64,000 nucleotides of DNA from Vitrella brassicaformis CCMP3155. Lineage: Eukaryota > Protista > Chromerida. Below the pieces are notes generated by a model. It did no database searches. It saw only the letters and a program-made list of their open reading frames with translations, and was not told the DNA's origin. The first letter of the stretch is position 1. The number at the start of each line of letters is the position of its first letter. Location of the stretch: NCBI GenBank assembly GCA_001179505.1, contig CDMY01000929.1, forward strand, positions 1-64,000. The letters run 5' to 3'. Positions 2,653 through 36,643 of the stretch are shown here, piece by piece. The position numbers were made by a program, and so were the translations under genes.

Positions 2653-2654
2653 GG

Positions 2655-4652: not shown

Positions 4653-4919
4653 TTATTTTGCGGCAGTATGAGACTGCTCAATGCCGGTCACACCACCAGC
4701 AAGTTCACGGGGCACTTCTGCATTATCCTTGTGAGCCACTGCTCCTTTCGGCATGTCCTCTTGGGTCCGCAAGAGTTCACGACGCGTAGAGCGGCAGCAG
4801 GCACCCGATGGTAGGCAGTAAGGAGGAGAACATCCGGAACCAGGGCAAGGGACACACTGTTGCACCGACGGCTGAAGGACGGCCAGAAGAATGACGAGAG
4901 CCAAGACGAGCTTCATCAT
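4653..4919 (-). CDS. Small secreted cysteine-rich peptide precursor (88 aa, intronless)
   Basis: MMKLVLALVILLAVLQPSVQ (signal-peptide-like), then QCVPCPGSGCSPPYCLPSGACC (6 Cys), then RSTRRELL (dibasic site) and a polar tail ending in TAA at 4653. Confidence 0.6.
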   Translation of the reverse strand: MMKLVLALVILLAVLQPSVQQCVPCPGSGCSPPYCLPSGACCRSTRRELLRTQEDMPKGAVAHKDNAEVPRELAGGVTGIEQSHTAAK

Positions 4920-5175
4920 GCTTGCGGGGTGGATGAAGAGGTGTTCGAAAGAGGTGCTTTGTGACGAAGGAATTTGTCGATCCACAGGGAGAGGAGATGG
5001 AGAATGCTTGTGATATGAGCACGATCCAACGTGCGATATCACGGGTTCCGAGACGTGGCAAGATGGGTCATCCTTCTGTCCCAGGGATCTGTCAGTGATT
5101 CTGTGTGACACCTTCGTGGAGTGGACCTCCGCATCGTCTGTCACTGTCTTTTCTGTGGTGTCCTGACATCGTTTT

Positions 5176-7061: not shown

Positions 7062-7090
7062 CTGCCGCACTGGGTCAACAACCTCTTGGC

Positions 7091-8704
7091 TTGGGTTCGT
7101 CTGTCTTGTCTGCTCGTCCGTCTCTTCCCTCGTCGCCGTGGCTTCGTGGCCATCGTCTGCTTACGAAGGCAGCAAGACACTTGGGTGTTCCTCTTAGTGT
7201 GTGTCGGGCGTGGGCTGAGGGTGTTGATATGTTGCTTTTTCGCTCGCCGTCTCGGTTTTTCCATAGCAACCATTCCTCTGTCTATGAGTACGGTGATAAA
7301 GTAGCCAAGGTGCTAGACAAGGCAGAACAGAAAGGATACATTCAGCTAGTCGATCACCAGCCCTTCATCGTCAGTCCTCTCGGGGCTGTGCGCAAGTCGA
7401 CCCCCGGCGAAGTTCGTATCATTATGGACACGTCTATTTCGGATCTCAATGACTGCCTTTTTGTGCCTGACATCGTATTGCCGTCGATTTTCGATGCAAT
7501 TCGTCTTCTCAAGCCTGGTCATTACATGCGCCAGCTTGATCTTAAGGATGCTCATCAGCATATCTACATCAATCCTGCCGAGGCCGATTTGCTTGGGTTC
7601 AAGCATCCGTCTTCTGGCCGCTTTTATGTCTGGCGTTTCATGCCATTCGGCTTGAGCTCTGCTCCCTTTCTTTTTGTCAAAAGCATATCGTACTTGAGGG
7701 CAGTCCTCGTCTCTCTCGGGCTCGAGTCTCTTCTCGATGACTTTTTTGTGGAGGGCTCTTCATTCGATCGTTGCGACGGTCACATGCGTCTTGTCTCGGA
7801 TGTATGTGGGCGTGTGGGGTGCGAGATTAGTAAGGACAAGGTTTTTGGGCCTTTGCGCGACCTTGAGTCGGTCGGTTGGCTCATCGACTATCTCCTGCAC
7901 GCTGTCGATTATGGATAAGAAGCGTCAGAAGATGCTCTCTCGCTTGCAGCAGCTTTTGGATGTTCCGCCTTTTGGCCCTCCATTGTCGGTGGTCTTGAGT
8001 GTCATCGGCTCTCTCTCTCATCTGTGTGATATCTTGCCTGACGGTGCTTTCCATCTGCAGCCCTTGTTATCTCTCTCTGCTCAGTCTACTCCTTCTGCGT
8101 CCGTGCGGACGTCACACAAGCTGTCTGTCGCTTACAAAAATTAGCCTGTTCCATTGCCGGGTCAGGGCGACAGTTTTTGATCGCACTTGCATTGGTGGCG
8201 TGACCAACTTTCTGTTTGCCCGTTTCGTCGTCTGTTTGTCGGTGCTGACGGATTTCTTTTGTGGGATCCTCATTTAGACCCGGCTTTCGCTGTGCCGTCC
8301 ATTCTTTCCCTCCCTCCACCTGCACGTATTGTTGGGTCGCCGAATACCCCAGCTATCTTCGTTCTCCTCACTGATGCCAGTGAGGAGGGTTGGAGAGCGG
8401 TTTGGGGCGAGCATGTAGCCAGAGGCAGATTTTTGGTATCCCTAGATGGAACCACTCGCCCCTCTTGCCCCGCCTTCGCCTTTGTCGTCCTTCCAGCAAT
8501 TGGCGTGAGTTGGCAGCTGTTTTGTTTGCCCTTCAGCGCTGGGCTCCTTTCTGGCGGGATGGTTTAGTGGCTCTTGGGTCAGACAATAGCAATGTCGTGT
8601 CATGCATTAATAAGCGCCGCAGTTCTTTTCGCGGCATCATGCATGTCGCTCTTCTTCATTCGCATCTTCATTTCATGATGTGCATTATCTGTCGTCTTCC
8701 TTGA
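7091..8704 (+). pseudogene. DIRS-type reverse transcriptase / RNase H, frameshifted
   Basis: ORFs 7091..7918, 7737..8144, 8187..8567 and 8390..8704 carry consecutive RT, connection and RNase H motifs in different frames. The catalytic YxDD reads LLDD. Confidence 0.88.
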
Positions 8705-9156
8705 TTTCTCACATCGCGCAAAGGCTGCGCTTGCGTTTCACTTTGCATTTCGGCTGTCTTCTCCCGTCTGACTCGCCTGTTTCCGTCGCTTGCCATCCCT
8801 GCATTCTACTGTAGACCGAGTGTCCGGCCCCATTCTTCTGACTCCCTCTACTGGTTTGACCGTCCAAGCGTTCAATTTACGTTGCTCGTCTTTGCCAAGT
8901 GTCAATTCCCGGTAGTTGTGGTCATTCATAAGCCTCTCTCTCTTACTGCCACTCGCCTTGCCCACCGCTTTTCTGAGTTGCTGCAGTGGCCGAAAGGCTC
9001 TCGTGTATTGTCATTGGCAAGGATAGCTTCTGACGGCTCTGTTGTGCATTCTTCACACTGTCAGCCAGCCAAACATTCCCTTCCGGTCTGCTTTCTTATG
9101 CCCTCGCCTTCTTAACCTTCTTCTTGGTGTGTTTGTGTCTGTGTGTGTGTTGTAGG

Positions 9157-9900
9157 TCTCAGGCGATGTCGGCTATTTCTCTCTCTCACCCGCCCTACCG
9201 TCCGCTCCCGACATCTTTTTGTACATTCTGCGGTGGATCGGGCTTTATGTCTGTTGCCCCGTATCCATCTCCTCCCTTACTCGCACATGCACGCGTTGCT
9301 TGTATATGCCAATCGTCGGGCGTTTATGCGAGGATTGCGTCGTGTCTCTGACAATACTTACTGTGGTAAGCTCCCTATCCCACCCGTCGGTTGGCGTCTG
9401 GACGTGCGTATGTGGCTATGTGTGTATCTGCAGACGTCAGTCAATGTGCGGGTTATTCAGATGAGGGCAGTATGACCATTCAATTTTCCCTGGACAACAC
9501 ACATCTCATGAGGTCGGCAAAAAGCACCCTGACTCATGCCATCCATCGCGGTGCATTGCTGTCTCCTACTCAGGAGGGCCACAGGGACGCTTCCGCTGAA
9601 GGTTGCAGCAAAGTGATGGAGCGCACGTACGCAGCGTCAGCTCGTTGTGCAGAGGCCTTCGAGCTGCTTGGGGGTTACTGCAGCCTGATGGCCGTGATGC
9701 CCTTTGGTCAGGCCGCCAAGTACATCATCACGGTCGTGGAGGCGCACCTGGACAAGTAAGCACCACACACACACACACTGCATCACCAAGATGTGTATCA
9801 CTTGTAGGCCGTGTGCCTTAGGTTCCCGATGCGTTCACTTAATCCCGACGGCGCCGTCCAAGTGGGCCGCCTTCGCCAAACGCCTTCCACACTCTAGTGC
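9157..9900 (+). pseudogene. Multi-exon fragment of an uncharacterised family (paralogue of 18.8-19.1 kb)
   Basis: Exons SDEGSMTIQFSLD.. and ..FELLGG..MPFGQAAKYIITVVEAHLDK match SDEGRSTVQFPID.. and ..FQSFGG..MPIDEACKYIITVVES*LNK, with the same exon order and a similarly placed downstream donor. Confidence 0.65.
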
Positions 9901-11081
9901 AAAGACAGATGCATACACACAGTCACACATACATGCTCACTGGGGCGAGCCTTTTTTCTCGTTTTGCTGCGCATGTGTGCACCTATGCCAAGCGTGGATC
10001 ATCTGATCGTGTCAGTTTTGCGTGGATGTATGCATGAGTGTCGTCGCCGATTTTCCGCAGTCCTGTCGAGCGTGTCATTCCACTTCTAGTTCTGTCTGCA
10101 TCCATGTATACATGAAGCTGGCTTTTCTCCATTGCATGTAGGAGGGAGAGTGCACATCAGAGCGCTCGTTTCGTGTGCATGCACCCTCTCACACGTGCAT
10201 ACGTTTTTTCTTCATGCCATCTTTTTTCGATGCCGTCCGATAGATAGAGCCGTCAGTCAGTGCCATCCTGTGTCGTCCTCTTTGTATCAGCTAGGGCTGT
10301 GAGAGAGAGAGTAACTGCTTCCTTCTTTTGCATCAGTCAGTCGCTAGGTCAGTCGCCGTTCACCACACACCTCTTACATGCACGATGCCACGCTTGATGC
10401 ACATGCATGCACGCATAGATTATCTACGCACACGTGCACACACACGCACATGCTTACTGGGGCGAATCCTTCTCTCTCGCCTCGGTGCACATGTGTCATC
10501 ATGTGTGTGCGCATGTGTGCCATCTGCATCTATGTATGTATGCTTGTTGAGCGAGCCAGGCCACTCTCTGCGTGGCGGTGTTGTGTGGGATGTCCTCTGT
10601 GTGAGAGTCCACAGCGCGTGCGTGTCACATTACTTCTGTCTGCATGCATTCATAGGTGAGACTGGCTATTTTACATTCCATCGTATTGCTGAGCTGGCAT
10701 GATGCGTATGCCCAAGTGTGTGTCGATAGTCAAGACAGACAGGTGGATGAATTGTGATGCATGCATGCGTGTTTACGATGACTGGACGGGTGGGTGGGTG
10801 GCCTTGCGCATTGGCTGGCAACACATTACATGACTGCCACGCGCGTGTTTGCATTGCAATGAAGTAAATCAATGAAGTTGGTTGACTTGTTGATTGACTA
10901 GTCCGAGTTGACCATCTAAGTACACAATCGTGCAACATTCATGCATGAATTGAGGTGCTTCATCAACAGAGAAAGTTATACACGAAAGGCCACACCAGAC
11001 TCAGCCTTACTACACACACAAAAGACTCATCAGATCCGGCCACAGACGCAGCATCAGGCGCTCATCTGATCTGCCTGCCCT

Positions 11082-11740
11082 TCACATCACACTGAGCACC
11101 TCCACTTCATCAGCCATGAAATACTGACTGCCCCTAAACAGAGCACGGCCATCCCCATCCCTCACCCCCACACAGGCCAAAGGCACATCGCGGCTGGAGA
11201 TGTACTGAAAGCAGCTACGCAAATCAGCAGCAGGGCTGCCCTCGTTGCCCAAAGACAACCACTCGATCATCAGCTTCTCCCGCCCCCCAGGCACTGTCCC
11301 GTCCGCCCAGTCACAGACACTGACTGGATACCTGCCGCCATCTGCCTCCTCCCGCGCAGCTACAGACACGAACTGCCTGCCTTCCATCATCTTGGTCGGT
11401 TTGTCGAAGTAGCGGTGAGGGAGAACTGCCACACATCACAGCAGTATGTATTCACTCTTCTTGGGTCATCTGGCAGCTCGATGCCGTCACTCATGTAAGC
11501 GCCGAACACCTAGCCGCCCTTCTTGATGGCAAATACCAGGCCACGGGCATCGCCCACACACCGCAGCATATCAGCATACGATGGTCCATTACGAGATGCT
11601 CTGCAGAGAGAAGAGATTGACAGATATACCACGCATCAAAGGCAAGTGTACCTGTAGATGAGCTTCAGTCTGATATTTGCGACTGTCAGTCCAAGGAAGC
11701 GATAGAGTGCAGCGGATTTGACGGGATCCAACGTTGAATC
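11082..11740 (-). pseudogene. TLDc-domain protein remnant, copy 1
   Basis: ..LRCVGDARGLVFAIKKGG*VFGAYMSDGIELPDDP..VWQFSLPHRYFDKPTK..LFRGSQYFMADEVEVLSV: TLDc core with an internal stop. Confidence 0.75.
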
Positions 11741-11849
11741 CTCGATCACCTGCGATGACAGACAACGATAGAGAGCATAGGTAGAATACTGATGCTTCTT
11801 CGTCTTGCTGATGTGTGTGTCACCTTTAGCGACCGAAGTGAGCGGCCGT

Positions 11850-12218
11850 CGACACGAATAACCTCCACTTCATCAGCCATAAAGTCCCAACTGCCCCCAA
11901 AGAGAGCATGGCCATCCCTACGCCTCACTCCCTCATAGCCCTCAGGCAATTCATCTCTGTCGATGTACTGAACGCAGTTGCCCATGTCACCGGCAGGGCC
12001 ACCCCCATGGCCTAACCACAAGCACCCACCGATCAGCACCTTCGCCCCCCCATGCACTATCCCCTCCCGGCCAGCCACATACACTGATTCCCGGACTTTC
12101 ATCATCTTGGTCGCTTTGTCGAAGTGGCCGGCCAGCGAGAAACGCCACAGACCACACTGGTAGCTGTCGTAGCTTGTTGGATCGTCGGGCAGTTCGATGC
12201 GGTCGTTGAAGTAGGCGC
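11850..12218 (-). pseudogene. TLDc-domain protein remnant, copy 2 (3' half only)
   Basis: AYFNDRIELPDDPTSYDSYQCGLWRFSLAGHFDKATK..LFGGSWDFMADEVEV, a paralogue of copy 1. Confidence 0.75.
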
Positions 12219-12310
12219 CTCGCCCTCACCCTTTCGCCTCTCAAATTCATCCACCAATTGCAGCCGCTCGCCGATTGTCACCTCGCCTGCATTCTTGGTG
12301 GTCACCCGAC
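12218..12310 (-). mobile_element. Short pogo-like transposase N-terminal fragment
   Basis: GEVTIGERLQLVDEFERRKGEGEA is near-identical to REVTIGERLQLADEFNRRKQSGEA at about 14100-14180. Confidence 0.65.
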
Positions 12311-13363
12311 GACAGACAGACCAGAGCATTCTACCTGTCTTGAAGTGAATACATTCCCTCTACCTGTGCGGCTTGTGGTGTCGTATGTCTTGCTTCGGGC
12401 AGGGAGGGCGGGAGGGACTCCGCGCGATACCGTGCGAGTCGCCGTCGACGCAGAAAGGGGCGACTGGTTCACCCACGCTGATCGCCGGCCGACCCATAGC
12501 TATCAGTGGATGTTTCAAAAAGGCCGACTCAGGGTCATCTGAAGCCGCTACACAATCGACATACAATTGCATCTTTGTCTGCACGGCTCTCGGCATGTGT
12601 TGTTTTTCCGCTCACGGGCAGACGATGACTGTTGGCGAGCGCCGCCCTCCGAACCGACGGGCGGCTCGACTCCCGCTGTCCGTATCTGCAGGACACAACG
12701 GACACAGTGATGTTAGATTAGCGCTCATTGGATGTCGTGTACACGCCGTATCCCTGTGGTGCATGTGATGGTCTTGTTTGAGGGCCCCATCTCGTTGGGG
12801 ACGTAAGGGATGTGAAACATCGACCATCCGTCAAGATACGCCCGGACACTGCAACCTGGATTGTAATGGTGACTTCGCTTGTGTTGCTCGAGAGCTGGCG
12901 GCCGAAATGACAGTGCGTCTGGTGTCACGCCGGCGGGCCGGAAGGCCATCTGCCAGCCACGGCCGAGAGTGCGCTTCACACATGATGCTTCGATCCACGC
13001 GTTACGGTGCTCAGCTGGGGCTTGCGGCTGAAAGCGGCTGCAGTCGAGATGGAGGTCGTCCCAGTGTTCGCTGAGGATTTAGAGAAACGCCTCTCCCATG
13101 GGCACAGCGGCCTCGTGGGCTCGCTCGTGCAGCGGTTGGCTGACAAGACCCTGCATGACAGCACAGACATGCATGCAGAGGGAGCCCACTGGCCCGTCTT
13201 GGCATCTTACCGCCCGATTGGCACTCTTTGCTTCATTCGATGGAGGGCCCAGAGGTTCAGCTGCACTGAAGTAGTGTGTAGCGGCGGCAGCCTCCTCGTC
13301 GGTGCCGACCGAGGAGGATGCGTGCGCAGGCGGGGGAGGCAGGGGCCTGGGCGGGGGATAGGG

Positions 13364-13663
13364 NNNNNNNNNNNNNNNNNNNNNNNNNNNNNNNNNNNNN
13401 NNNNNNNNNNNNNNNNNNNNNNNNNNNNNNNNNNNNNNNNNNNNNNNNNNNNNNNNNNNNNNNNNNNNNNNNNNNNNNNNNNNNNNNNNNNNNNNNNNNN
13501 NNNNNNNNNNNNNNNNNNNNNNNNNNNNNNNNNNNNNNNNNNNNNNNNNNNNNNNNNNNNNNNNNNNNNNNNNNNNNNNNNNNNNNNNNNNNNNNNNNNN
13601 NNNNNNNNNNNNNNNNNNNNNNNNNNNNNNNNNNNNNNNNNNNNNNNNNNNNNNNNNNNNNNN
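13364..13663. other. Assembly gap (300 N)
   Basis: Run of N flanked by G-rich sequence. Confidence 1.
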
Positions 13664-13779
13664 GGGGGGGGGGGGGGCTCTATGGCGGGCTGCTCGTCCA
13701 CTGAAGGCTGCTGAGGGGCCAAAGCAAGACCCTGACGACCAAAGGGGACAAGAAGTCGATGAAGCACCACCCTCACTGT

Positions 13780-14200
13780 GTTCTGTCCGACCTGCTGGTA
13801 TCGTTTCTTGACCGCTTTGATCCACGTGTCGCTCGCCGAAAAGCCACTGATGCCCAGCCGTACGAAGCCTGCATCGCCTTCTCCCTGATGGCCATAGGGG
13901 GGACGCTTGTGGGGTCATCATGGCCAGCCATCAACTGGCGGATCTCATCCTCAATCTGCGGATATTGCGGCGGTCTGTTGCGCCTCTTGATGGGATCCAG
14001 CACCTGCGTGCCCGCCTCCCTCTGTTTCTTGACGGCATAGTGCCACTCCTTGAACCGATGCGGATCCTTGCCCTTCTCCTTCGCAAACTGAGCCATCGAG
14101 ATGGCCTCGCCGCTCTGCTTCCGTCGATTGAATTCGTCCGCCAGCTGCAGCCGCTCGCCGATGGTCACCTCGCGTGCCCCATGAGTGGCCACCTGAAGGG
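13780..14200 (-). mobile_element. pogo/Tigger (Tc5, CENP-B-like) transposase DNA-binding region, truncated
   Basis: A first HTH (ERLQLADEF..SMAQFAKEKG..FKEW) is followed by RNRPPQYPQIEDEI..IREKA..ASYGW..FRR, typical of the HTH_Tnp_Tc5 domain. No intact DDE domain was seen. Confidence 0.75.
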
Positions 14201-14959
14201 ACTCAAACAAGACCATGGTGGTGCAACAGACAGAAGAGTGCCCCTCGCCCTCTCGCCTCAGCGACCTTTTGTTGCCCGACAGCCCCTTGTGCGCCAGCCA
14301 GGGGATGGGGAGGCGCTGCTGCTGCTGCCGGGCCATCGGCGACCGGTACACCCCTGCTGACAGCTGGTGACAAATCACTAGCTAGCGGTGGGCGCCCTGC
14401 AGTGCCATCTGACGACCGCACACAATCGACAGTTGTGGATGCGCGTCTGTATTCTGGCAACTCACTTGCAGACCCACCAGGTGCTCCCTGCTCGTGCGGC
14501 GCCAGTCGGTCACCATGCACATCTGGAGAACAACCAGGGCCTACCTCTGACTCAGCCGTTTCACTTGCCCACGTGTATGTAGGTTGCCGCTTACTCCGGG
14601 ACCAGAGTTCTTGCGGTCCAGCACCCGCACTCGCAGCCGCACCGCCTGGCGTCTGATTGAACGATGGATGGGGCCGTCCTGTCGGCTGCGCACACACGGG
14701 GGCGGACAGGTGTCAGGCAGACACGGCGGGGGACTGCTGTGTGCATGTACCTGGTGACGTGGCTCATGGTGGAGAGTTGCATAACGAACCCCATCACCAT
14801 GACCAGCCTGAGAAAACAAGAACCCATGGCAAGGCAGGGGCTCTATTGTTGCACAGTACCTGTGTTTGGGTACCCAGCGCCCTCACCGTGTCACCCTGAA
14901 CCATCACGCCACAAACAGAAGGATCAGCCATAGGGGCGATGTGTGGCGACACGCAGCAC

Positions 14960-15658
14960 CACCTGTGAGCGACTTTTGCCCACCTCGCTCATCAGGTCCC
15001 CTCTTTCGTCGAAATAATCAGCCCCGACTCATGTGCCTGCATTCCTTCGTAATTTCATTCTTGAATCTGGTCAGGATTGGCTTCATCGTCTTATCCACCC
15101 TCTGTCCACTTTCCCGTGTTATTTTTCTCTCCCCTCTGCTGAGCGCCGTGTGTTGTTTTCATTCCGCACCGGCACCTATACTTGTGCTGTCACAGATGGT
15201 CGGCTGACTCACCGGCCTCGTCTACTACGCTTCTGCCCATTCTGCGCTGCTACTTGCCCTCCCGCCAGCTGGCCCATGCCGTGCCGTGTGCCACCTGTTG
15301 AGGATGAGTTGCATGTGCTTTTCTATTGCCCGCTCTATAGCTCTCCACGTAGGGAGGTCTTTCGTGTTGTTCGCATGTATGGTTTGACTGCACCGGATGG
15401 TGTGGTGTATTTTTGGTGGGATCTTGCTCATTGTGATGCCCTGGTGTTCGCATGGTCCTTGCTTACTTCGCGCTCTCTCCCTATGCAACGTGCGTTGGCT
15501 CAGTTTCTTTTGATGGCTGTGGCTTCTGGCAAGCGATGGCTTTCTTTGCGCTCATCAGCTTAGTTTCCTCGATATGACAAACGCTTTTATGGACACAGCA
15601 TCTGCCCTCAGGGGCCGGGACCTCGGTGTCCGTTAACAAACGAACGAACGAACGAACG
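14960..15658 (+). mobile_element. 5'-truncated non-LTR retrotransposon (LINE): ORF2 C-terminus, 3' UTR and (AACG)5 tail
   Basis: FRTG..V.DGR..R..RFCPFC..VEDELHVLFYCPLY..R is the C-terminal Cys/His motif of LINE ORF2. The element ends in TTAAC-AA(CGAA)n at 15633-15658. Confidence 0.85.
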
Positions 15659-16299
15659 CAGGCGCAGATCGAAGCTCGCAAGCGTGGCGTCGATCTTCGC
15701 GGGGCAGTCCCAAAGTGTCTTCTTAGTTATTTTTCGGCATCCTCAGCCTCGTTTCTTTTTGGCTGACGATGCCATCGGCCTCTCCTCCCTCAGAGGGTCA
15801 CGTTGGTCTTTGTCCGGTCTTCGGCCGTGCCTATCTGGCGGTGGTCAGCTTTCTGACCTCTCCCCATCGTGCTGCCCGTCTTGGCAGTCATCTCACTATT
15901 TAGCCTTATCACCTCATCCAGTGGCGTCCTTCCCCTCTCTCGGCACGCCCTCCCCTTTCCCCTTGTGCCGCTTCTTGATCTTCGTATGAAGATTCGCACG
16001 CTGACGCCTTCTCTCAACTGACCAACATGACGAGATTTGCTCCTGCATCTGCTGGATGGAGTCGCCATCAGCGCCATCAGCTTTCCTGCCTTTGGGACAC
16101 GCGCTCTCCCCTCGGTCCCCCTTCGTCAGAGTGTGCTGAACCGGTGCAACCGCCCTGGTGATGCTGCAATGGTGTTTCCGTGGGGATTTGAGGGCGTATG
16201 CTTTGGTGCATGCTTCAGTTTTTGCACTGGCACCGTGCTTCATGCTATATCTTCTATATGTGGGCTGAGGCAGATACTCATGATTTGCCATTCGGGTGG

Positions 16300-17441
16300 T
16301 GTCTTGTGTGAGGCGGTCTATCACGTGTAGTCGCTGCGCCACCATGTCTTTTCTTTTGTGTGTGCATGCCACGCGTGTGGTTATACTTTGGCGTGCCTCT
16401 GCGCATTGAGATCAGGCTGGTGTCAGTTCATGTCAATGCCTCATGCCTGTATATCGTATATGGGACCCTTCTGGCCTTCATCTGTCTGTCTACCTTGCTC
16501 CCCCAGACTTCTACCTGCCTTTCGTATGTCGATTTTAGTGGTGGGGTGAAGCAACTGGTCATGGGTGTCATTCCTGTGGTCTCTCTGCCTGGTATCCATC
16601 CCATGTGGCGTATTGCCCGCGCCAAAGGGCGCCGTTTTCTTTATAGACCGTCGCCTTGCCAGTGAGACCACAAGTGTGTCATTGCATGCCAGGGCCTCAT
16701 GTCTATCTGGCCGTCCATCGATGAGGCGGGGCTGTCTCTGTCTGCCATCTATCTTCCTACTTAAGTCCAGTCAGGCCTCCCTCTACGTGTGACTGTCAGC
16801 TGCCTATTGACCCGGGCATACATAGAAAGGAGAGCCAGCTCGTGTGGCCCGTTCAATGAGTGTCGCTAACACAAGGCACTGACCGATGGTTGAGTGATCC
16901 GTAGGAAGGTAGGAGGGTAGGAATGCACCTTAGGCATCGTCTGTCTGCATGTTGTAGGGCGTAATGGCCTGTTTGGCTTTCCTTCTTTCTGTCCCTCTGC
17001 TGTCTTCCTGCCCTCCTTGCATATGGGTCCCGTGTGTACATGGGGGTGTGTTCATCTGATTGGTTGTTTGTTGCGTTTGATGGCTCAGTGGGCTTCATTC
17101 TTTTGCTTGCTTCCTCTGGCTTCTGTACACTTGCCAGGGCTTCTTGCTGTCGGGCGATATCGCCCATTCTTGTGTATGTAGCCAGGGGAAGTGTTCGTCA
17201 ACGTTCTACAAGGCGGTTAGTGCCCTCTGTTGTCATCTGAGTGTCGGCCGGTGCCAGTGCCTTTGGTGGTGGACCATAGGGGTGGGTGGATAGACAGGCC
17301 TTGTGCATACTTCGTGTGTGTGCATGCTGCCTGTTGGGTGTGTGCTGTGGACAGAGAAGATGTCCGGTAGCGCCGAAAGGCAGGCGCCGGGCTTAGGGAC
17401 AGGCGTCTCGTCAAACTCTTAACCGACCGACCGACCGACCG
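16300..17441 (+). mobile_element. Highly decayed LINE remnant with (ACCG)5 tail
   Basis: Degenerate RT-like motifs LSYVDFS (about 16520) and SMRRGCLCLPSIFLL (about 16720; compare GVRQGCPLSPxLF). It ends in TTA(ACCG)5 at 17419-17441. Confidence 0.5.
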
Positions 17442-17879
17442 ATGTTGGTGGACGCCCAGATGTTGTGTCATGTGCAGGTCTCTTCTCTCAGCGCAAGCCG
17501 AGCTCTTGGCAGGTGTTGTGCTCTGGAAGTCTGCTTTGGTGTTCCACCACTCTTCTTCTGCTCCTGCTGTGGGTGTGCTGTCGTCCTCGAGCCGAAATAA
17601 GATGACGCAAAGGCAAGCAAAAGAAGCTTCCCCTCCCAGTTGAAACTGTGAGTTGCAATGGATCGCGTGGTCTAGTAAGGAAATGGCCCGAATGGTGTAT
17701 TCAGGGATAGCCTTGTTTGGTAACGAGATGGTGGTCCGCCTGTTTGCTTCTTATTCATCCCGGTGTGTGGTGTCTGGCGCTTCTCATTCTGCTGCCCCTC
17801 CTTGTCATCATGCGGTTCTTCACTCGATTGTTCCCGCGCGGCAGTGCATTTCCTTGCCACGTTTGCGTCCTTGCGCCAG

Positions 17880-19100
17880 TGGTGCCACTGCTTGCCAGGC
17901 ACTACAGCGACCATCACAACCCCAGTCCGGCAGCATACGGGCCCAAGGCACCGGCTATCCAGCAGGAGCACGGCAATCACGGCGCTCAGGGACGTGTCAC
18001 GCAAGGTCAGGTGAGTCTCGTTGACCAGGCGGGCCGTGTGTTCGACGCGTACCTGCACGAGAAGGGAGAGACCTCGCTCAGCCTCATAGTGGTCGCGGCC
18101 GGATACTGCATCCTCATGCCCTGGCTGATGGCGGCGGCAGAGAGCATCGAGGGGTGTGAGGTGACTGTGGACGCCCACACCATCGGCTTTTACAGGGTGG
18201 ACATTCCGGGCCGGGAGAAGCACAACCACAAAAATCGCATCCATGTGGCCATCACAGGCCAGTGCAGTCTGCACGGGTAGGCAGGATGAGCTTTTGAAGG
18301 GGGTGCATGTCATATGTGTGTCTGAAGTGTGTGAGTGTGTCTCACTCGGGTCATGCACGCCAGTTGAAGGATGAGGTTGTACGAGCATCGCGAGAGCTCG
18401 GCCTCGGTCAACATGGGCGGCGGCTACACCAAAACCGCTTCTACACGGCCAAGCTGCAAGGAGCCAACATGAGTGGGAATTCTTCCTGCCTGTGCCAGCC
18501 CACGCCGCCAAGCCCTTCCTTCGCTGCTTCAGACGCAGCTTCATCAACGACGGGAGTGGTCAGGTGAGCCATGAGAACGTGGACCTGGGCATGGCCGAGT
18601 TGAGTGTTGTGATAGAGTTCGAATACGGCCGCGGCTGGTATGACTTCTACTACATGGACAAGCATAAGCTGCACCGCCTCGATAACTACGGTGAGCGCAG
18701 TGACCGACAGTGCTGGTAAGAGGTCTGATTGTGTGTGCTGTGTTACGTCGTGTGAGGGGATGGTTGCAGATGCATTCAACACTGTGTCCAACCTCACGCG
18801 AGGCTTCTCTGACGAAGGCCGGAGCACCGTGCAATTCCCCATCGACGACAGGGCACCCAACCTGGTCAGTCAGTCAGGAACAGACACGCATTGGATGGAT
18901 GGTAGATGGATGTGTGTATGTGTGTGTGGTCATACAGGACGGCCACCATGTGCCGACTGCCGGGCAGGGCAAGGAGCGGCTGCGCCAAGTCTCGCTCAAG
19001 ACCGCCCAGATATTCCAGAGCTTTGGCGGCGATTTCAACGCGATGACGAAGATGCCCATCGATGAGGCCTGCAAGTACATCATCACGGTGGTCGAGAGCT
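17880..19100 (+). pseudogene. Uncharacterised multi-exon gene, probably disabled
   Basis: Coding-like exons with canonical splice sites (..VTVDAHTIGFYRVDIPG..GQCSLHG; ..FYYMDKHKLH..; ..KYIITVVES*LNK). There is an in-frame TAG at about 19087, and the gene is cut off at the 3' end by an opposite-strand fragment. Confidence 0.6.
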
Positions 19101-19213
19101 AGCTCAACAAGTGAGCAGCACCAACCACCGACACAGACAGACACACCCACACGAATGCATCCAGATGTCGCTTGATTTGGTGTTTTGTGTGAGAGCGTGT
19201 GTGTGTGCACTTA

Positions 19214-19290
19214 CTTGATGATCCGGCCGTATTGGTTGAAGTGCGGCTGCAGGTCAGTCTCGGTCCACTCATTCGGCACCTGCACATACC
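19214..19290 (-). pseudogene. Isolated RRM exon (CELF/Bruno-like RRM start)
   Basis: AG|VPNEWTETDLQPHFNQYGRIIK|GTAAGT, flanked by splice sites; resembles RRM helix 1 (QVPRTWxExDL..F..YG). Confidence 0.5.
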
Positions 19291-19394
19291 GACACCAATG
19301 CCACACACACGTATACGTACGTACAAATGTCTCTCTGCCAAGGCAACGAGGGGACGAACGGCCCTCGGTCGTACATGGAATATGAAGATATTGG

Positions 19395-19429
<35 letters not shown>

Positions 19430-19444
19430 GCACACACAGAGACC

Positions 19445-19800
19445 ATACGCCCGTGCTCCATTCTCGCCGTGCTTCTGATGTGCTTCTTGAATCAGTCGCT
19501 TGGCCTTGTCTGCTGTCTGCAGGGCGAGGAAGCCGAACAGCCATCGGAGGTTCTTGCCGTTGGGATGGTCCTGCTCCACTATGATTTGCTGTCCCTGCTG
19601 GTTCATCACGGGCTGATTGTTTGCATCTAGCTATGGCGCGAGTATTCTCATCGGCGGGACATCTTCATCCTTGTTAGGTAGATAGACCTTCACATCCATC
19701 TCTCTTGCTGCTAGATAGGCTCTGAGGGTAAAGTCCCATTCGCGCCACTTGATGCCATTCTCGCCACTCCTGCCGGTAAAGACGGGGAAGATGGCCATGT
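19445..19800 (-). mobile_element. Ty1/copia-like gag N-terminal fragment
   Basis: MAIFPVFTGRSG..KWREWDFTLRAYL.. continues in frame through one TAG (19631-19633) to LFGFLALQTADKAKRLI..ENGARAY, like copia gag N-termini. It is truncated against a (GT)n intron. Confidence 0.6.
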
Positions 19801-20715
19801 CGCCATCTCTGTTGTCTTCTGGTGGTGGTTGTCTTTCTTCAGATACAGCTGGTACTTGACTGCTGCTGATGCTGCAGTACCAGTCAAATGAGAGCAAGCC
19901 TGCTGACAGACCTGTTCAGATCTGGCAGTCGGTTGGCGAGGGCTTCGGCTCAGATGAATAGGAACCAAGTCGCTGCGCCCATGTGCAAAAAAAGGCCGGT
20001 GAAGAGCTCTTCTATAGTAAGCTGAAGAGAGGATCTGTTAAGCGGTGAGTCCCAGAGTCAGATTGCTTTCACTTCAGTGAGGCTAATGGACTGGCCAGTC
20101 AGTAGTCGTTTCTGTCCACATGTAGCATCATGAGGGGTGGTCAACACAGATCTGCGTTCGGTGATGGCTGAAAAGGTTGTCTGCACTGCCAGACGCATAA
20201 GTTCCCTCGCGAACGCTTGCCTTCTAGCGCGCCCTTGCGTGAAACACACAGCGACCCTAGCTAACAAGCCTAGCCCACAAGTGGGTCGTCTTACTGTTTT
20301 GACAGGCTGTGAGCGTATCATTCCGCAACAATGCCTTCCCTTCCCCCCCGTCCATTCAGCTTGCCCCTCGATTATTCAACTGATCTTTGGGATTGCGTTC
20401 GTCGTTGCTTCAGGTGTGAATCTCGCTAGAGTGAACGGCGCGCCGCATTTGAAGCAAGAACCGCTGGAGGTACAGCTTACGGGAACTGCGTCCGGTCGGG
20501 TCTCAAAGCGACCCTTCACCTCGTAGCGCCCACCTCGACCGTAATGGAACGGAAGAAAGATTCGGTCCTGGGGTTCATTTCCTTGGCAGGTGAGCTCCGT
20601 CAGACGCGCGACTGCTTTCAGACTAGCGTTTGTCAGCCTAAAGCCTAAAACCTTTGAACACTTCCGAGCCCGGGTTTGTCTTGAATGCCTCTTTCGCTTC
20701 TTTCCTGGCAGGTTG

Positions 20716-21080
20716 GATGGATTATGGCGATGATGAGAATCTGGGTGGATGACTACTTTTTGGCGGGTGATGGTGTCCAGCATGGAATTCAACAAATCCA
20801 ACGGACCTGTGGATTATGGCGATGATGAGAATCTGGGTGGATGACTACTTTTTGGCGGGTGATGGTGTCCAGCATGGAATTCAACAAATCCAACGGACCT
20901 GTGGGATTGTACGAAGTACTGGCCAACGGGTGAGTCGTTTTCTCGCGGCGGGAAGGGTGGAGACTGCTCGAATATCTCCTAAGTCCAACAACTACAAGTT
21001 CTCAAAGGTTTTTATTGGGAACTTCGTGAGGAACAATACGTGCCCCCGTAGGGAAGAGGGACCAGGAGCGAGTTAGACGA
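20716..21080 (+). mobile_element. Ty1/copia-like RT fragment containing a 92-bp tandem duplication
   Basis: MMRIWVDDYFLAG..STGQRVSRFL..SNNY resembles the copia RT YVDD region. 20718-20809 is repeated exactly from 20810. Confidence 0.6.
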
Positions 21081-21639
21081 TATGTCAGCGAGTTAGACGA
21101 TACGTTAGGGAATGGAAAGCGCGTCGACCTGCAGGTTTATTCAATGTCAATTTCTTTCCAATATACACATCTCTCTCTGTTCCATCGTATGATTCAGAAA
21201 TGCGAGAGCATCATGCGGCCAAACGAGAGGACGTCGGCGACTATGGAGCTCAGCAAGAACGACCCAGAATTCAGCGGCTCGATTTACTTCAGAGTGGGGA
21301 AAGATGAAAGCGGACCGCTGTCGGACACACGGGTGGGCTACGGGTTAAGGGTGAAGACGAAGTATAATGGCGCCACGCTTTCTGGGCAGTTCCGATAAAT
21401 CCGTTATGCCCTGGGAACCGAGGACAAGGTCAGGGGTTTTACGAGCATGAAATTTTCAACCAAGGCCGCGAAGATCAGGGGATCTTGAAGTTGAATTCGG
21501 AGGAGGAAGAGTTGAAAGTCCACATCGCCAGTCATTCCTCAAAGAAAGGCGAATATGAATTTTGGCAGCAGCTTTTGATTCTTGTTCTAAGCCTCGGCTC
21601 CGCCCTTTTTTCACTTCATGCTTTGAGATCGCGCATGAA

Positions 21640-22180
21640 GTGTGCAAGACGCGAGGGAAACAGGCGGAGGCAGAGGCACAGGCGGCACAGGCAGGGGCAT
21701 GTGCGGCGAGACAAGCGGCAGAGGGAGCGAGAGATGCGGCAGGGAGAGCGGAACGGACGGCACAGGCAGCGGCACAGGCGCCGCCGCACAGGCGGTGGCG
21801 CAGGCGGTACAGGCGGTGGCAAAAGCGGTACAGACGGCAGAGGCGGCGGCACAGGCGGCGGCACAGGCACAGGCGGGACAGGCGGCTTAGGCGCGACAGG
21901 TCGCGGCACGGGCAGTGGGACGGGCACAGGCGGCGGCACAGGAAGCGCATGTGGCGGCACAGGCGGGACAGGCGGCGGCAGAGGCGGGAGAGGTTGGCAC
22001 AGCCGCCGGGGGTACAGGCGGTATGGGTGGCACAGGCGGCAGAACAGACGGCACAGGCACCTGCGGCACAGGCGGCGATACGGGCGGCACAGCAGGCAAT
22101 ACGGAAGGCACAGGCGGCGGCACAGACAGAATGCATAGGTGGCGGCATAGGCGGCGGCACAAGCACAGGCGGCACACTGA
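21640..22180 (+). repeat. GGCACAGGCGGC-based minisatellite; frameshifted Ala/Gln-rich coding remnant
   Basis: The AQAAAQ-rich frame passes across ORFs 21562.., 21642.., 21915.. and back again, with homopolymer-free shifts. Confidence 0.8.
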
Positions 22181-22224
22181 CTTACTCGATAGTAGAGTCG
22201 TAGAGCCGATACCTGAAGTTAGAG

Positions 22225-23018
22225 ATGTATATATTCAGCTTCTGAAGACAGCTGCGAAGCTCCTTTTTTCTCTTGTGAATCTTGTAGTGTATGGTTGCTT
22301 CTCAGTCTGCTCCATTGCTATGTGTCTGAGGAGGAAGGGTACGGATTGCCTTGTTTATCGGCTGCTGCACCTTGACTAATTTTTTTGTCCAGTTCCGTCT
22401 TCTCTCAAGTGACTGATGCTTGGCTATGTAGTTCATCTGTATCCACATGTCTGTTTTCCCCATGCTCACTGTTCGGATGTCATTATGGAATTACTTGCGA
22501 TGTAATCTTCAAGGCTTCCTCCACCGATTTTTAACTTCAAGACCATCTGATCCTTGTCGCCTCGGTTGAAACTCCTTGGATAGCTTCAACCTTAGGCCAA
22601 CTTTCCTGGTGACAGTGGTAGACTGAAGTGGTAGACTGAAGTGGTGATAGCGCTACTTATCACTTTTAGTATCCCATCAAGCTCTTCGAGACAACTACTG
22701 TCTTTCAGCAGTGTTGCATAAGCAGTGTACTACAAATATTGTGTCGGATTCTTGAGATAATTCTCACGCTCGAGGCAACACAGCATTATTTATGCACAGG
22801 ATCATTCTTGGAAAACAGAAACTTCACGTACAAAGTTGAATTGTCGCAATGCTGAACTTGCTTGACATTAGGGATTTATCTAATCTAAACTGCAGGAAAA
22901 GTTGTAGCGAAACACCGCCTGTTCGTCAGCTGCACTAAGAGCTTAACCACGTCTCTTCTCAAAGATTGGAGCCTTTGGATAAGATTGACTGCAGGGATTC
23001 AAAGCCTCCCTGCTCCAT
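22225..23018. repeat. Unclassified AT-rich dispersed repeat, copy 2
   Basis: 22225-22400 matches 1478-1650 in direct orientation. 22976-23018 is a reverse-complement copy of the ATGGAGCAGGGA..TGAAT..AATCTTATC motif. Confidence 0.7.
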
Positions 23019-23129
23019 CCACCTCTTTTTCACTTCGAAGCTTCACTTTCGCTTGTTCCCTGTTTTCCATTAGTCACGAATCAAGACGGAACTCAACCGA
23101 AAAATTCGATATGCAGCAACCGATAACCC

Positions 23130-23868
23130 CTTCCTAAGCCCCCTTAGCCCTCTAAGCCCCCTAAGCCCTAAAGCCCCTGAGCCCCTAACCCCCTAACCCC
23201 TAAAACCCTAAACCCTAAACCCCCCTAAAACCCAGACCCTAGACCCCTAACCCCCTAACCCCCAACCCCCTAAACCCTAAACCCCCCCCAGCCCCCCTTA
23301 GACCCCTNNNNNNNNNNNNNNNNNNNNNNNNNNNNNNNNNNNNNNNNNNNNNNNNNNNNNNNNNNNNNNNNNNNNNNNNNNNNNNNNNNNNNNNNNNNNN
23401 NNNNNNNNNNNNNNNNNNNNNNNNNNNNNNNNNNNNNNNNNNNNNNNNNNNNNNNNNNNNNNNNNNNNNNNNNNNNNNNNNNNNNNNNNNNNNNNNNNNN
23501 NNNNNNNNNNNNNNNNNNNNNNNNNNNNNNNNNNNNNNNNNNNNNNNNNNNNNNNNNNNNNNNNNNNNNNNNNNNNNNNNNNNNNNNNNNNNNNNNNNNN
23601 NNNNNNNGCCCTAAGCCCTAAGCCCTAAGCCCTAAGCCCTAAGCCCTAAGCCCTAAGCCCTAAGCCCTAAGCCCTAAGCCCTAAGCCCTAAGCCCTAAGC
23701 CCTAAGCCCTAAGCCCTAAGCCCTAAGCCCTAAGCCCTAAGCCCTAAGCCCTAAGCCCTAAGCCCTAAGCCCTAAGCCCTAAGCCCTAGGCCCTAGGCCC
23801 TAAGCCCTAAGCTCTAAGCCCTAAGCCCTAAGCCCTAAGCCCTAAGCCCTAAACCCCTAAACCCTAAA
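23130..23868 (+). repeat. Internal telomere-like array (G-strand CTTAGGG) spanning a scaffold gap
   Basis: 23608-23852 is 35 in-register GCCCTAA units (three point variants), followed by ACCCCTAA and ACCCTAAA. 23130-23307 is degenerate CCCTAA(A/G/C) in the same orientation. Confidence 0.95.
23308..23607. other. Assembly gap (300 N) inside the telomere-like array
   Basis: Run of N. Confidence 1.
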
Positions 23869-24119
23869 GGGAAGGGAATGGGGGAGGACACACAGTTTCT
23901 TTCGAGCTGGCGAAAAGATAACACTCTCTCTGATCGTCATCCATTATGTGCTGGCACACAGACAGGCCAGAAGAGAGCCGGGCACATGCAGGAAAGCCAC
24001 GGCAGATACCAGACAGACACAAAACAGTGTCTGTCTCTTGTTTTGTGTCTGTCTCTTTCCCGCTCGCTGGCGACACAGCCAATCAGCCGAACGGACTGGT
24101 CGGTGTGTGTGGGTGTTGG

Positions 24120-24289
24120 CCTGTCTGTCTGTGAGCCGCCCGTGTGTGACGGATGCACCGACGAGAGATCAACACACTCTCGCCAGCACACGTCGACCAG
24201 GAGCTTCACAGACAGCCAGACGGCAGCCCAAACACCGCCCCACAGAGCGATTCTCTATGCGGCCAATCAGCCAATCGTCCCCTTCTTTC

Positions 24290-24320
<31 letters not shown>

Positions 24321-24537
24321 TGTCATATTTCCCCCGCCCCCCACTCACCGGCTCACACACTCACGGGAGCAGACAGACGGCCCACACGCATAACCACACA
24401 CAGTCCACACAGAGAGAAAAGGCCGACCAACACACGACAGCCGTCCCCTCACACACACACAGCAACAGACAGAGAGAGAGAGAGAGAGTCCGTCGACTCA
24501 TCGGCCGATCATCCTGCCTCCCACACACAAATGAATC

Positions 24538-24568
<31 letters not shown>

Positions 24569-24720
24569 ACAGACGAGCAGCACTCAGCAGCGGTTGGGGA
24601 GAGGGCCATCGCGCCACTCGACGGCCGCATCGTCTCCATCAGCGCGGCGAAGCCGTCGGCCACTCAGCCAGACAGCCACACCTGCACACAGACAGACAGA
24701 CAGACATCTGTGTGTGTGTC
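24120..24720 (+). repeat. Duplicated subtelomere-like module, copy 1
   Basis: GAGCCGCCCGTGTGTGACGGATGCACCGACGAGAGATCAACACACTCTCGC.., GCCAATCAGCCAATCG and CAGACGAGCAGCACTCAGC are shared, in the same order, with 25975-26700. Confidence 0.85.
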
Positions 24721-25974
24721 AGTCAGATCCATTTGTGTGTGTCGGCACACCACAGAGTGGCCAGGCCATTGTGTCTTCCGCTCCGCCGATGGGCACAGCT
24801 CATCGCCTCAACGCACAAACTGACACACACACACAGACGACAGACAGACATCAGATGTGCCTCGATTCAGTTATCAGTTCATCGACCCCTTCAGCTCACC
24901 TCGCCCTCTCTGTCTGTCTGTCTGTCTGTCTGTCTGTGTGTGCGGTGTGTACCATCGCTCGCACGAGGCCTCAAGACAGTCACAGCCACACACGCCGGCA
25001 GATCTGTTGTCAGGCGAGGCGATGTCGCCGCCGGCTGGTCCCTCAGCTCACGACAGGCAGACACACGGCGGCCATATCTCTCTCGTCAGTCAACCAGGCA
25101 AAGACCATCGGCTCCAACGGCATCGGATGTCATTGTGTGCCGCGGGGGGTCGTCGGCCAACGAGCGCTTTGCGAGTCGACAGAGATGACTTAGGAGGGGA
25201 CATAAGAGTGAGAGAGAGGGAAGGCGTCAGATCTGCAGATCTCAGCTCGCGATCGGACGGCGTGTGAGAACTGCAATTCCGCCGCTGCAGTGGATGGGCC
25301 AAATTGCGAGTGCGAGGTGAGCGCATTCTCATTGACTTAGACAGATCGTCAACACACAGTTAGTCAAATTGCGTGCTGCGTGGAAGGTGTCAGTCTGTCT
25401 GTGAGATGCTCGACGGCCACCGCACACAGAGAGTGAGGATAATCACTCACTGTGTTCGGTGACCATCCAGCACTCTACAGCCAGCACACCGACGCACGAT
25501 GAACACCAGAGGGAACCAAACAGATTTCTCTCTCTCTCCTTCCCACATTTCCCACATGGACACATGTAGCAATGCGCCACCCACCATCCGTCTGCACCAG
25601 ATGTGTCGGACACATCAGTCGACATGCGGTGGATCACTCAGGCCAAAAGCGTGTGTTCAGAAATACACACACACAACACCATTCGACCTCCATCATTTAT
25701 TTGCCACTGTGCAAGGCACCCGCCCATCGGCACACAGAGAGAGAGAGGCGCACAAAACCCGTCAAGGCACGCAGCGAACACATTGATCCACCCGTAATCG
25801 ACGTGTGTCTGTCTGTCCACTTCCCTCTGTGCGCATCTCTGTCGCCACACGGCAACCCCAAAGCACCAACACCACACGTGGGCTGATGCTCTAGCGTTGC
25901 CACTGGCGGGGAGACAGATGCCCACAAAGGGGGAGGGGGGTTGAATTGAACCGATAGATCTATCGACCCGTCTG

Positions 25975-26137
25975 TCTGTCTGTCTGTCGGTGAGCCGCCC
26001 GTGTGTGACGGATGCACCGACGAGAGATCAACACACTCTCGCGAACACACGTAACACACAAGGAAGCCATAGACAGAGGGCAGCCCAAACACCGGCCCAC
26101 ACAGCGATTCTCTGTGCAGCCAATCAGCCAATCGTCG

Positions 26138-26173
<36 letters not shown>

Positions 26174-26700
26174 GTCTGTTCTCCTGTGGTGGCTGTCTGT
26201 CGAGCATCGGCCGACCCACTGAGGAGTGTAAGCAAGAGAAGCATGACGATGCACAGACCGATTCCCTTTGTCAGTGTGCTCTCATGCGGCCGACCCACGA
26301 GAGGACAAAGCGATTCAGTTAAGTCGAGTCAGTCAGTCGTCGACACATGGGCCGACACATGACACACACACACACAGACGAGCAGCACTCAGCGGCCATC
26401 GTCAGTCGTCAAACCCGCCAGCCAGCCACACCTGCATGCCACACAAACCACACACAGACACACAGACACACAGACAGGCGGCTGATTCTCCTGTCGTGTG
26501 TCACATCCATCCCATCCCTCTCTCTCTCTCTCTCTGTCTGTGTGTGTGTGTGTGGCTGTCTGCCTGCGCACCGCTGCGGTGTTCGAGTGCAGTCGGCGGT
26601 AAGTCACCTCGGCGCCCTCAGCTGCAGCACTGTCTGTCTGTCGTCATGACGGACGGCCGCACCCATACTCACTCGACAGACAGACAGACATCTGTAGCAC
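25975..26700 (+). repeat. Duplicated subtelomere-like module, copy 2
   Basis: See copy 1: collinear blocks separated by variable microsatellites. Confidence 0.85.
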
Positions 26701-27078
26701 AGCACACAGAGCAGACCGGCCGTCTCACATCATTGCGATGCTCGAGGCGTCACTCACTGACCTGACGGACTCGCCACGTGTGTGTGCGTCTGTGTCGCCG
26801 ACCTCAGCACACAGACGTGGGCGCTTTATATATAGCGCTGCAGCACCGATAGGATGCGCCGGCGAGGGGTTGAATGAGCGGGGGCGCCGAAATAGACTCA
26901 TGCACCGCTCTATGGCTTATGCAGGTGCTACTGCTTTGAGGGCGAAATTTCGGTATTTGATCTGCGAGCTTAGCTTGGGGAGCTCGTGTTCTTTCCAGGG
27001 AGCAATGAAGGCTTAAGCCGCATGCTTCACAATACAGAAGGCCTTTGGGGAAAGATCCGCGCGATTCCATTGATATCT

Positions 27079-34575: not shown

Positions 34576-36643
34576 TCAAAAATCGTCGTCATCATCGAAA
34601 TACACTGCCTGCGCGTGCTGGTGCTCAATGTAGGCATCAATGTCATCGTCAGCATCACCATAGTACTCCAACCCCCCCTCGATCTGCTGATCGATGTAGT
34701 CATCGATATCGTCGCTTGGCTCCATCTCGCGATGGGCGTGCTGCTGCTCGATGTAGGCATCAAGATCGTCTTCAGCATCACCGACATACTCAGCCCCCTG
34801 CCCCTCCAGCTGCTGGTCGATGTAGTCGTCAATGTCGTCGCTCTCCTCCATCTCCCGCTGTGCATACTGCTCCTCAATATATGCATCGAGATCATCGTCG
34901 GGATCGGCGACGTACTCAGCCCCCTCCAGCTGCTGATCGATGTAGTCATCGATGTCGTCGCTTGGCTCCATCTCGCGATGGGCGTACTGCTGCTCAACGT
35001 ATGCATCAAGGTCGTCATCAGCGACAGACTCGGCCCCCTCGATCTGCTGATCGATGTAGGCGTCGTCATCCTCATCCAGTTGCGCGTCGTACTGCTGCTG
35101 CTGTCGGTGCTGTGCGTACTGATCCTCGATATAGGCATCGAGATCATCCGCATCGCCACTATAGTAGTCAGCCCCCAAGCCCTCCCCCTCCCCNNNNNNN
35201 NNNNNNNNNNNNNNNNNNNNNNNNNNNNNNNNNNNNNNNNNNNNNNNNNNNNNNNNNNNNNNNNNNNNNNNNNNNNNNNNNNNNNNNNNNNNNNNNNNNN
35301 NNNNNNNNNNNNNNNNNNNNNNNNNNNNNNNNNNNNNNNNNNNNNNNNNNNNNNNNNNNNNNNNNNNNNNNNNNNNNNNNNNNNNNNNNNNNNNNNNNNN
35401 NNNNNNNNNNNNNNNNNNNNNNNNNNNNNNNNNNNNNNNNNNNNNNNNNNNNNNNNNNNNNNNNNNNNNNNNNNNNNNNNNNNNNNNNNNNNNCCCCTCC
35501 CCCTCCCCCTCCCCCTCGAGTTGCTGCTCGACGTAGGCGTCAGTATCGTCCATTTCCTCCATCTGACGCTGGTACTGCTGCTCGAGATACTCGTCTTCCG
35601 CCTGATGGTGCTCGTGCTGCTGCTCCTCGACCAGCTGATCGACGTAGTCATCGATGTCGTCTGCTCCAGGCTCAGCGTCGGCGAACGGCTGGTCGTAGGC
35701 GACGTTCTGGTGGTAATCCCAACCCTGTTGAATGCATGACAGACAGTGGATATGTATATCTTGTGTGTGGGCAGGGGGGATGTGTCTGTGTGTGGAGGTG
35801 TGTGTTACTTACCTCCTGATGGGCTTCCTCGTGTGCTGCTGGTACCGGCAGCGCATCGAAGGCCACCTGTGCCACACAAGCACATCCATGGACAGACAGA
35901 CACATATACGACTGTGCGCCTGTGCGCGCGCGTGCGTGCCTGTGTGCGTGTGCATGTGTACCTACCTGCCCATGCTCCCCAGGCTGCTCCTCATCGTCGT
36001 CATCCTCATTCGATGCCTCCTGAGAATACACACCAATCCAAACCCACACACCGGTGTCTGTAGGTGTGTGGTTTTTGTTCATGAGAATACCTCGTCGGCA
36101 TCGTTGACATCCTCCTGGCCCGTCGCCGCCCGCAGCTGCTGCACGGTGTCACGCAGGCCGTAGTTGACACTCACATGCGCCTCTGCAGTCTCTCGCCTAA
36201 TTGACAGGCATTTGATAAGGCCCTGAGGCGTGCATCCATGTGTCGTGCTGGTGGTGTACCTGCAGGTGGGGCAGACGGCTGTGCGACGCGGACCGCGGCG
36301 AATGAGCCTCCGAACACACTGCATACACACACAATGCACGCAGGCAAGCGACGACAGAACACCGATTATCGTGTGAATCCATCTGTCTCGTGTTCTCTGT
36401 CTGTCTGAACCCGCTGGCAGAAGGAGTGACCTGATAGATTGCAATGCACACATGACGCACAATCACAGCACAGATCTGTGCCCATCTGAGATCTCTCTCC
36501 GTGTGCCTGTGCCGACATGTGTGTCTGTGTCGTGCTCCTCACTCACCGCATCTGAGAACCTGAGGCTGCCTGCGGGCGTGTTGATGATGGTAGTCCTCGA
36601 AACACACATCACACTGGGGAATCTCCGCGACGTTCTCCGCCAT
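34576..36643 (-). CDS. RING-HC finger protein with long C-terminal acidic tandem repeats (spans a gap)
   Basis: The spliced N-terminus reads MAENVAEIPQCDVCFEDY..PQVLRC|GHSFCQR|CVRRL..CPTCR..VNYGLRD. The last exon has ~40-aa repeats DDLDAYIEQQYAHREMEPSDDIDDYIDQQLEGAEY and a stop at 34576. Confidence 0.88.
35194..35493. other. Assembly gap (300 N) inside the acidic-repeat exon
   Basis: Run of N between (CCCTCC)n tracts. Confidence 1.

Follow-up and report, generated by a model that had tools for sequence, protein, structure and literature searches.

Telomere-type heptamers at positions 23608–23868 of the window (the whole stretch of 64,000 nucleotides analysed here, from one scaffold of Vitrella brassicaformis CCMP3155) probably form a variant-repeat block of a telomere whose subtelomere starts at 23869 and extends rightwards, a reading to which we assign a probability of about 0.8. 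The observations behind it are the canonical unit of Vitrella telomeres, the bias of variant units towards the proximal part of those telomeres, comparable blocks at other ends and chromosome-end architecture in the right flank. Against it, the distal side of the block meets a gap and no canonical array is seen beyond it, and the degenerate repeats are distal rather than next to the subtelomere, the reverse of the usual gradient. The array is ordinary telomere biology, a fresh example of a known variant-block structure in a new organism, and it leaves knowledge of how telomeres work unchanged. With it comes a first description of Vitrella telomeres, which have TTTAGGG as canonical unit, a variant-rich inner region and at least ~45 recognisable chromosome ends. 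Telomeres are not mentioned in the Vitrella genome paper (0 occurrences; PMC4501334), none of the literature naming both Vitrella and telomeres appears, by title and abstract, to treat Vitrella telomeres, and a literature search for CTTAGGG returned primer and aptamer matches only.

The features, with their positions in the window, are:

1188–3608, no strand assigned: satellite of ~60 bp that runs in both orientations, at the end of the left piece remote from the array (TRF)
23130–23307, minus strand: degenerate telomere-like tract, C-rich on the plus strand (sequence reading; Fisher test against terminal arrays)
23308–23607, no strand: 300-N assembly gap whose length is a fixed placeholder rather than a measurement
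23608–23868, minus strand (the G-rich strand): telomere-type heptamer array (in-register reading and TRF)
23608–23782, minus strand: perfect run of 25 CTTAGGG units (175 bp), adjoining the gap, its length a lower bound
23847–23868, minus strand: three canonical-type units, CCCTAAA, CCCCTAAA and CCCTAAA, with a sharp junction with subtelomere/unique DNA at 23869
24074–26808, plus strand: copies of repeat families found 0.2–3 kb inside other telomere-bearing ends, in matching orientation (genome similarity search)

Assembly and repeat structure of the array

The assembly (72,700,666 bases) is Illumina-only, was made with velvet (k = 75), SSPACE, GapFiller, IMAGE, ICORN and REAPR and then one extra scaffolding round, and consists of 4177 contigs in 1064 scaffolds with 931,689 N (PMC4501334). 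These figures give 4177 − 1064 = 3113 gaps, or ~299 N per gap, and every complete gap inspected (four in the window and those on C571, C315 and C1017) is exactly 300 N long. Because nearly all gaps in the assembly are such fixed 300-N placeholders, the size of the gap at 23308–23607 is uninformative. Two other gaps in the window, at 13364–13663 and 35194–35493, fall within poly-G and CCCCT-type tracts, from which it appears that breaks in the Vitrella assembly favour G/C homopolymer-rich DNA.

TRF reports a period-7 array at 23608–23867 with 37.0 copies, 96% matches and a score of 476. Read in register, 23608–23868 comprises 32 perfect GCCCTAA units and three units with one-base changes, followed by three CCCTAAA-type units; on the plus strand, the order from 23608 is 25 GCCCTAA, 2 GCCCTAG, 2 GCCCTAA, 1 GCTCTAA and 5 GCCCTAA. 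An earlier, sequence-only reading of this DNA had counted 35 in-register GCCCTAA units, a number that holds for the register, but only 32 of them are perfect. On the minus strand, going outward from the right flank, the series becomes 3 TTTAGGG-type, 5 CTTAGGG, 1 CTTAGAG, 2 CTTAGGG, 2 CCTAGGG and 25 CTTAGGG units, and then the gap. The block units CTTAGGG, CCTAGGG and CTTAGAG derive from canonical TTTAGGG by single-base changes, and the G-strand of the array (minus) is directed away from the right flank, which is the orientation of a telomere.

The array is far above chance expectation. Genome-wide, (CTTAGGG)4 has 26 matches, 24 of them inside the array, against 0 for a reversed-pattern control, and four or more consecutive CTTAGGG units were found, in an assembly-wide search, only here and in the terminal array of C1000. 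As the perfect run of 175 bp exceeds the assembler k-mer of 75, the copy number in the assembly is a lower bound. A perfect repeat longer than the k-mer, the use of iterative gap fillers (GapFiller, IMAGE) and the position of the assembly's two longest arrays, which both adjoin gaps, also suit the idea that gap fillers stretched a few real CTTAGGG units, making block and join both artefacts. However, such extension requires pure CTTAGGG reads, which only a real array of about one read length or more could supply, and the specific interruptions (CCTAGGG twice and CTTAGAG) lie within 90 bases of unique DNA; an assembly product of this kind is very improbable.

Both edges of the gap at 23308–23607 are C-rich on the plus strand, as the sequence-only reading had stated. 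Its conclusion that the array is not a head-to-head fusion of ends is borne out, the two sides having the same polarity where such a fusion would have opposite orientations. TTTAGGG-type units do lie where that reading had confined them, at the right edge and in the left flank; the left flank is more mixed than it had allowed, with TTTAGGG-like units in the middle and CTTAGGG-like units in its leftmost ~55 bases, beside the left unique DNA.

Telomere repeats at contig ends

The canonical telomere unit of Vitrella is TTTAGGG. Runs of (CCCTAAA)4 number 282 in the genome, and the canonical arrays inspected are terminal and of natural polarity, C-rich where a contig begins and G-rich where it ends, with exceptions on C571 and C1017. 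A census of terminal arrays covered 29 contig-end arrays for end composition and 30 arrays (687 units) for unit counts. At least five canonical units are outermost at 26 of the 29 ends, the remaining three contigs stop within variant repeats, and no contig-end array finishes in a CTTAGGG run longer than three (n = 29). Among the 687 units, TTTAGGG accounts for 446, CTTAGGG for 45 (6.6%) and TCTAGGG for 42. The CTTAGGG share falls with distance from the junction, from 17/150 in units 0–4 to 1/108 in units 15–19, and the unit is enriched within the first 15 units from the junction. It is present at 17 of the 29 ends. Common natural variants in the 30 arrays alter the T-tract only and keep GGG, and the 31-unit canonical run on C571 includes no variant unit.

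CTTAGGG is thus neither the telomerase product nor limited to the 23608–23868 locus. The sequence-only reading had proposed, as one option, that telomerase now makes CTTAGGG and that TTTAGGG units are relics; this fails on the outermost units and the terminal run lengths, and a lineage-wide change of the telomerase repeat fails with it, since 26 of 29 ends finish in TTTAGGG. The same reading had held that ends with TTTAGGG only, and CTTAGGG confined to this locus, would speak against it; TTTAGGG is indeed found at contig ends, but CTTAGGG extends beyond this locus, being a minority unit at the 17 ends noted above. Searches for a telomerase RNA with the ciliate model RF00025 gave no match in the genome, the model being equally silent in control genomes, and an Rfam scan of the 64-kb window gave no match.

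A weaker form of this proposal has CTTAGGG as a present or recent telomerase product, from a changed template or a second telomerase RNA allele, and the blocks as template variants rather than replication errors. Its presence at 17 of 29 ends, alternating with canonical units at C310 and C649, agrees with this, as does the restriction of common variants to the T-tract, which resembles Plasmodium GGGTT(T/C)A. We nevertheless consider it highly unlikely, given that variants are concentrated near the junction, that 26 of 29 ends have canonical units outermost, that the C571 run is variant-free and that no contig terminus bears a long CTTAGGG run. The Plasmodium repeat is degenerate, with both units intermixed along the whole telomere and the third T varying. 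These related alveolates both tolerate T/C variation in the T-tract of a TTTAGGG-type unit, whereas in Vitrella it is the first T that varies, in a block, with canonical distal units.

Other Vitrella ends carry blocks of variant units. The C1000 terminal array passes from canonical units through CTTAGGG ×4 and CCTAGGG ×3 and then back to canonical units up to the contig end. TCTAGGG forms blocks of eight at the C697 end and seven at the C658 end, CTCAGGG forms a block of 11 at the C374 end, and the C260 end has a higher-order variant repeat of CTTCAGGG/TATAGGG/TGTAGGG. The rare CTTAGAG unit of the window array is also found in the C649 telomere, and CTTAGGG sometimes alternates with canonical units (C310, C649). 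A recent duplication involving the C1000 end was considered for its CTTAGGG/CCTAGGG pattern, which it has in common with the window array, and rejected: the subtelomeres are only 71–79% identical.

Several smaller features were seen at contig ends. At the start of C894, three telomere units near the junction are flanked by an inverted repeat of ~25 bases. C658 (35.6 kb) terminates on the right in a full telomere; near its left end lie a 3-unit C-rich telomere-like tract (163–183) and then the subtelomeric element in left-end orientation, and the contig may have chromosome-end features at both ends. Eight contigs (C117, C206, C396, C240, C425, C470, C614 and C623) stop 80–330 bases past one common dispersed element. 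A short TTTAGGG-CCTAGGG motif is part of this element, which explains most isolated CCTAGGG matches.

Right flank and origin of the block

The right flank resembles the DNA inside other Vitrella telomeres. The repeat family at 24074–25000 has 71 genome matches, and its nearest copy lies 0.7–3 kb inside nine telomere-bearing ends (C104, C595, C802, C720, C571, C634, C574, C591 and C1000), in an orientation matching the window in 9 of 9. A second family, at 25387–25522, lies ~270–560 bp inside the C802 and C591 telomeres, again in matching orientation. The right-flank repeat family is also present away from ends, and hence is enriched at ends rather than exclusive to them. A sharp canonical junction like that at 23847–23868 is likewise found at other telomere ends. 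From its polarity, its sharp canonical junction and the subtelomeric repeat architecture beside it, the array appears to have begun as the telomere of the right-flank end, and we interpret it as a homogenised variant block belonging to what is, or once was, a chromosome end. The 'buried or mis-scaffolded chromosome end' of the sequence-only reading gains support from the same polarity and right-flank repeat family.

An interstitial satellite that grew in situ out of a short telomere-like seed, without ever having been part of a chromosome end, would fit the non-telomeric DNA on both sides in the scaffold, the left-flank polarity, which is wrong for a chromosome end, and the true interstitial tract within satellite on C1017. 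It is nonetheless very unlikely: the polarity, sharp canonical junction and subtelomeric repeat family all fit real ends, and the CTTAGGG/CCTAGGG/CTTAGAG mix also occurs in the C1000 and C649 terminal arrays. A variant amplified as an interstitial satellite had been the other option offered earlier, and its element of local homogenisation is retained here, but at a chromosome-end telomere rather than in an unrelated interstitial satellite.

For the variant block of a telomere, the following course of events is plausible. Vitrella telomerase makes TTTAGGG, while the inner telomere is passed on through ordinary replication, with no renewal by telomerase. There the first T of a unit may have mutated to C, and CTTAGGG may then have spread to neighbouring units via replication slippage or unequal exchange to give a homogeneous block. 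We infer this mutational mechanism (T-to-C change, then homogenisation) as Arabidopsis-like. In Arabidopsis thaliana, the telomeric region begins with degenerate repeats, followed by variant and then canonical ones, variant arrays span 6 to 3,384 bp, one end has 15 consecutive TATAGGG units ('monomer homogenisation'), higher-order repeats occur and variant patterns are specific to each end (PMC11406999). Both species have canonical TTTAGGG and one homogenised variant. The Vitrella block, at least 35 units, is longer than the homogenised TATAGGG run of 15; its variant, CTTAGGG, has 0 occurrences in the Arabidopsis atlas (PMC11406999); its degenerate units lie on the far side of the block, unlike those of Arabidopsis; and it is known from a scaffold-internal position.

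Human (CTAGGG)n blocks are described in one report as a single-base variant of the proximal telomere that is not made by telomerase and undergoes replication-dependent gain and loss (PMC2764434). Proximal blocks of a single-base variant are thus common to human and Vitrella, although the human unit is a hexamer, and human instability was measured in people, whereas the Vitrella block is known from assembled sequence alone. In the manner of ITS (internalised ends or break repair), the Vitrella scaffold has telomere-type repeats between non-telomeric DNA, the contiguous Vitrella case being that on C1017. In the window, a gap separates the array from the left DNA; the arrangement is not head-to-head, hence no end-to-end fusion, and the array greatly exceeds in length the insertions of a few units left by break repair.

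Left flank and position of the array

G-runs of at least four bases occur in 14 of 24 units in 23130–23307 and in 9 of 687 units in the terminal arrays (Fisher p = 2e-17), and these long runs are unlike the natural variants, in which the T-tract is changed and GGG kept. Unique DNA followed by C-rich repeats fits no natural end in either orientation, and 23130–23307 is therefore probably one margin of an interstitial repeat. The 110 bases immediately preceding it have no other copy in the genome. Pure sequencing noise, considered on account of the G-runs, is disfavoured: at k = 75 the tract contains no repeats, and it adjoins unique DNA directly, so that ordinary reads anchored there should have fixed it, and other gaps in the window also lie in real-looking poly-G/C tracts. 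Across the 300-N gap, the left flank has the polarity of the array and, in common with it, the rare CTTAGGG unit.

The left piece, at the scaffold start, is formed by two contigs (1–13363 and 13664–23307) composed of dispersed repeats that recur on many small contigs. No Pfam domain was found in 12 of its ORFs (13.1–22.2 kb), and the piece has no similarity to any of ~90 mostly chromosome-end loci compared. A retroelement added to the telomere was rejected as its source, with no Pfam domain in the 12 ORFs and no poly(A) at the junction.

Two chromosome-end-like arrays elsewhere bear on the join. On C571 (265300–266800), a (TTTAGGG)31 array at local 496–789 has natural polarity and is followed by a gap at local 790–1089; the usual subtelomeric element lies 2 kb inside, and beyond the gap are unrelated unique DNA and 65 kb more of scaffold. 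This array is a second buried chromosome end or a misjoin. On C1017 (1–2619), a contiguous (CCCTAAA)16 interstitial tract at 1004–1116 is inserted inside one unit of the ~60 bp satellite, and a second, longer tract at 1922–2104 comes just after a 300-N gap; a CCCTAGA variant and the downstream satellite are common to both tracts, which are either a higher-order repeat or an assembly duplicate.

On one reading, the left degenerate tract and the array are the two edges of one real tract, a former end now internal, in which unique left DNA, degenerate units, a part hidden by the gap, the CTTAGGG block, the three canonical units and the subtelomere follow one another. We give this an even chance. 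Both gap edges have the same polarity and carry CTTAGGG, which accounts for only 6.6% of telomeric units; the assembly has no other long CTTAGGG array as an alternative partner for the left contig; the degeneracy of the left tract would have allowed its assembly from ordinary reads with an anchor in unique DNA; and the contiguous 16-unit tract on C1017, in the ~60 bp satellite family, shows that such tracts exist here. Yet the scaffold was built from short reads and the join spans a placeholder gap, the 23 kb on the left are two repeat-rich contigs at a scaffold end, unlike the chromosome-end loci compared, and the C571 telomere likewise adjoins a 300-N gap and then unrelated DNA.

The last point equally serves the second reading, in which scaffolding wrongly joined a repeat-rich 23-kb piece onto a live telomere. 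Because true ends have no real neighbour, spurious scaffold links there go unopposed; the left piece amounts to a small tip of the scaffold, rich in repeats, and two buried ends of ~47 are of the order expected from scaffolder error. A wrong join is a serious contender, at somewhat less than an even chance, and we lean slightly towards the single real tract.

If the tract is single, the array could be a recently internalised end: a critically short telomere, eroded down to its variant block, would have joined satellite- and transposon-rich DNA and would now be a private CTTAGGG minisatellite, a scenario that we hold tentatively, at just under even odds. In that case C571 could be a second case, and both would record recent karyotype change in a chromerid. 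C929, which holds the array, and C571 have chromosome-end structures inside scaffolds and should be treated as possible misjoins in synteny or karyotype work.

The ~60 bp satellite at 1188–3608 belongs to the family that also carries the interstitial telomere tract on C1017. It flips near 2650, from the plus strand before to the minus strand after, in a large inverted arrangement. On C743 (23582–25232), a telomere directly abuts unique, gene-like DNA, and the ~60 bp satellite lies 0.9–1.5 kb inward of that telomere.
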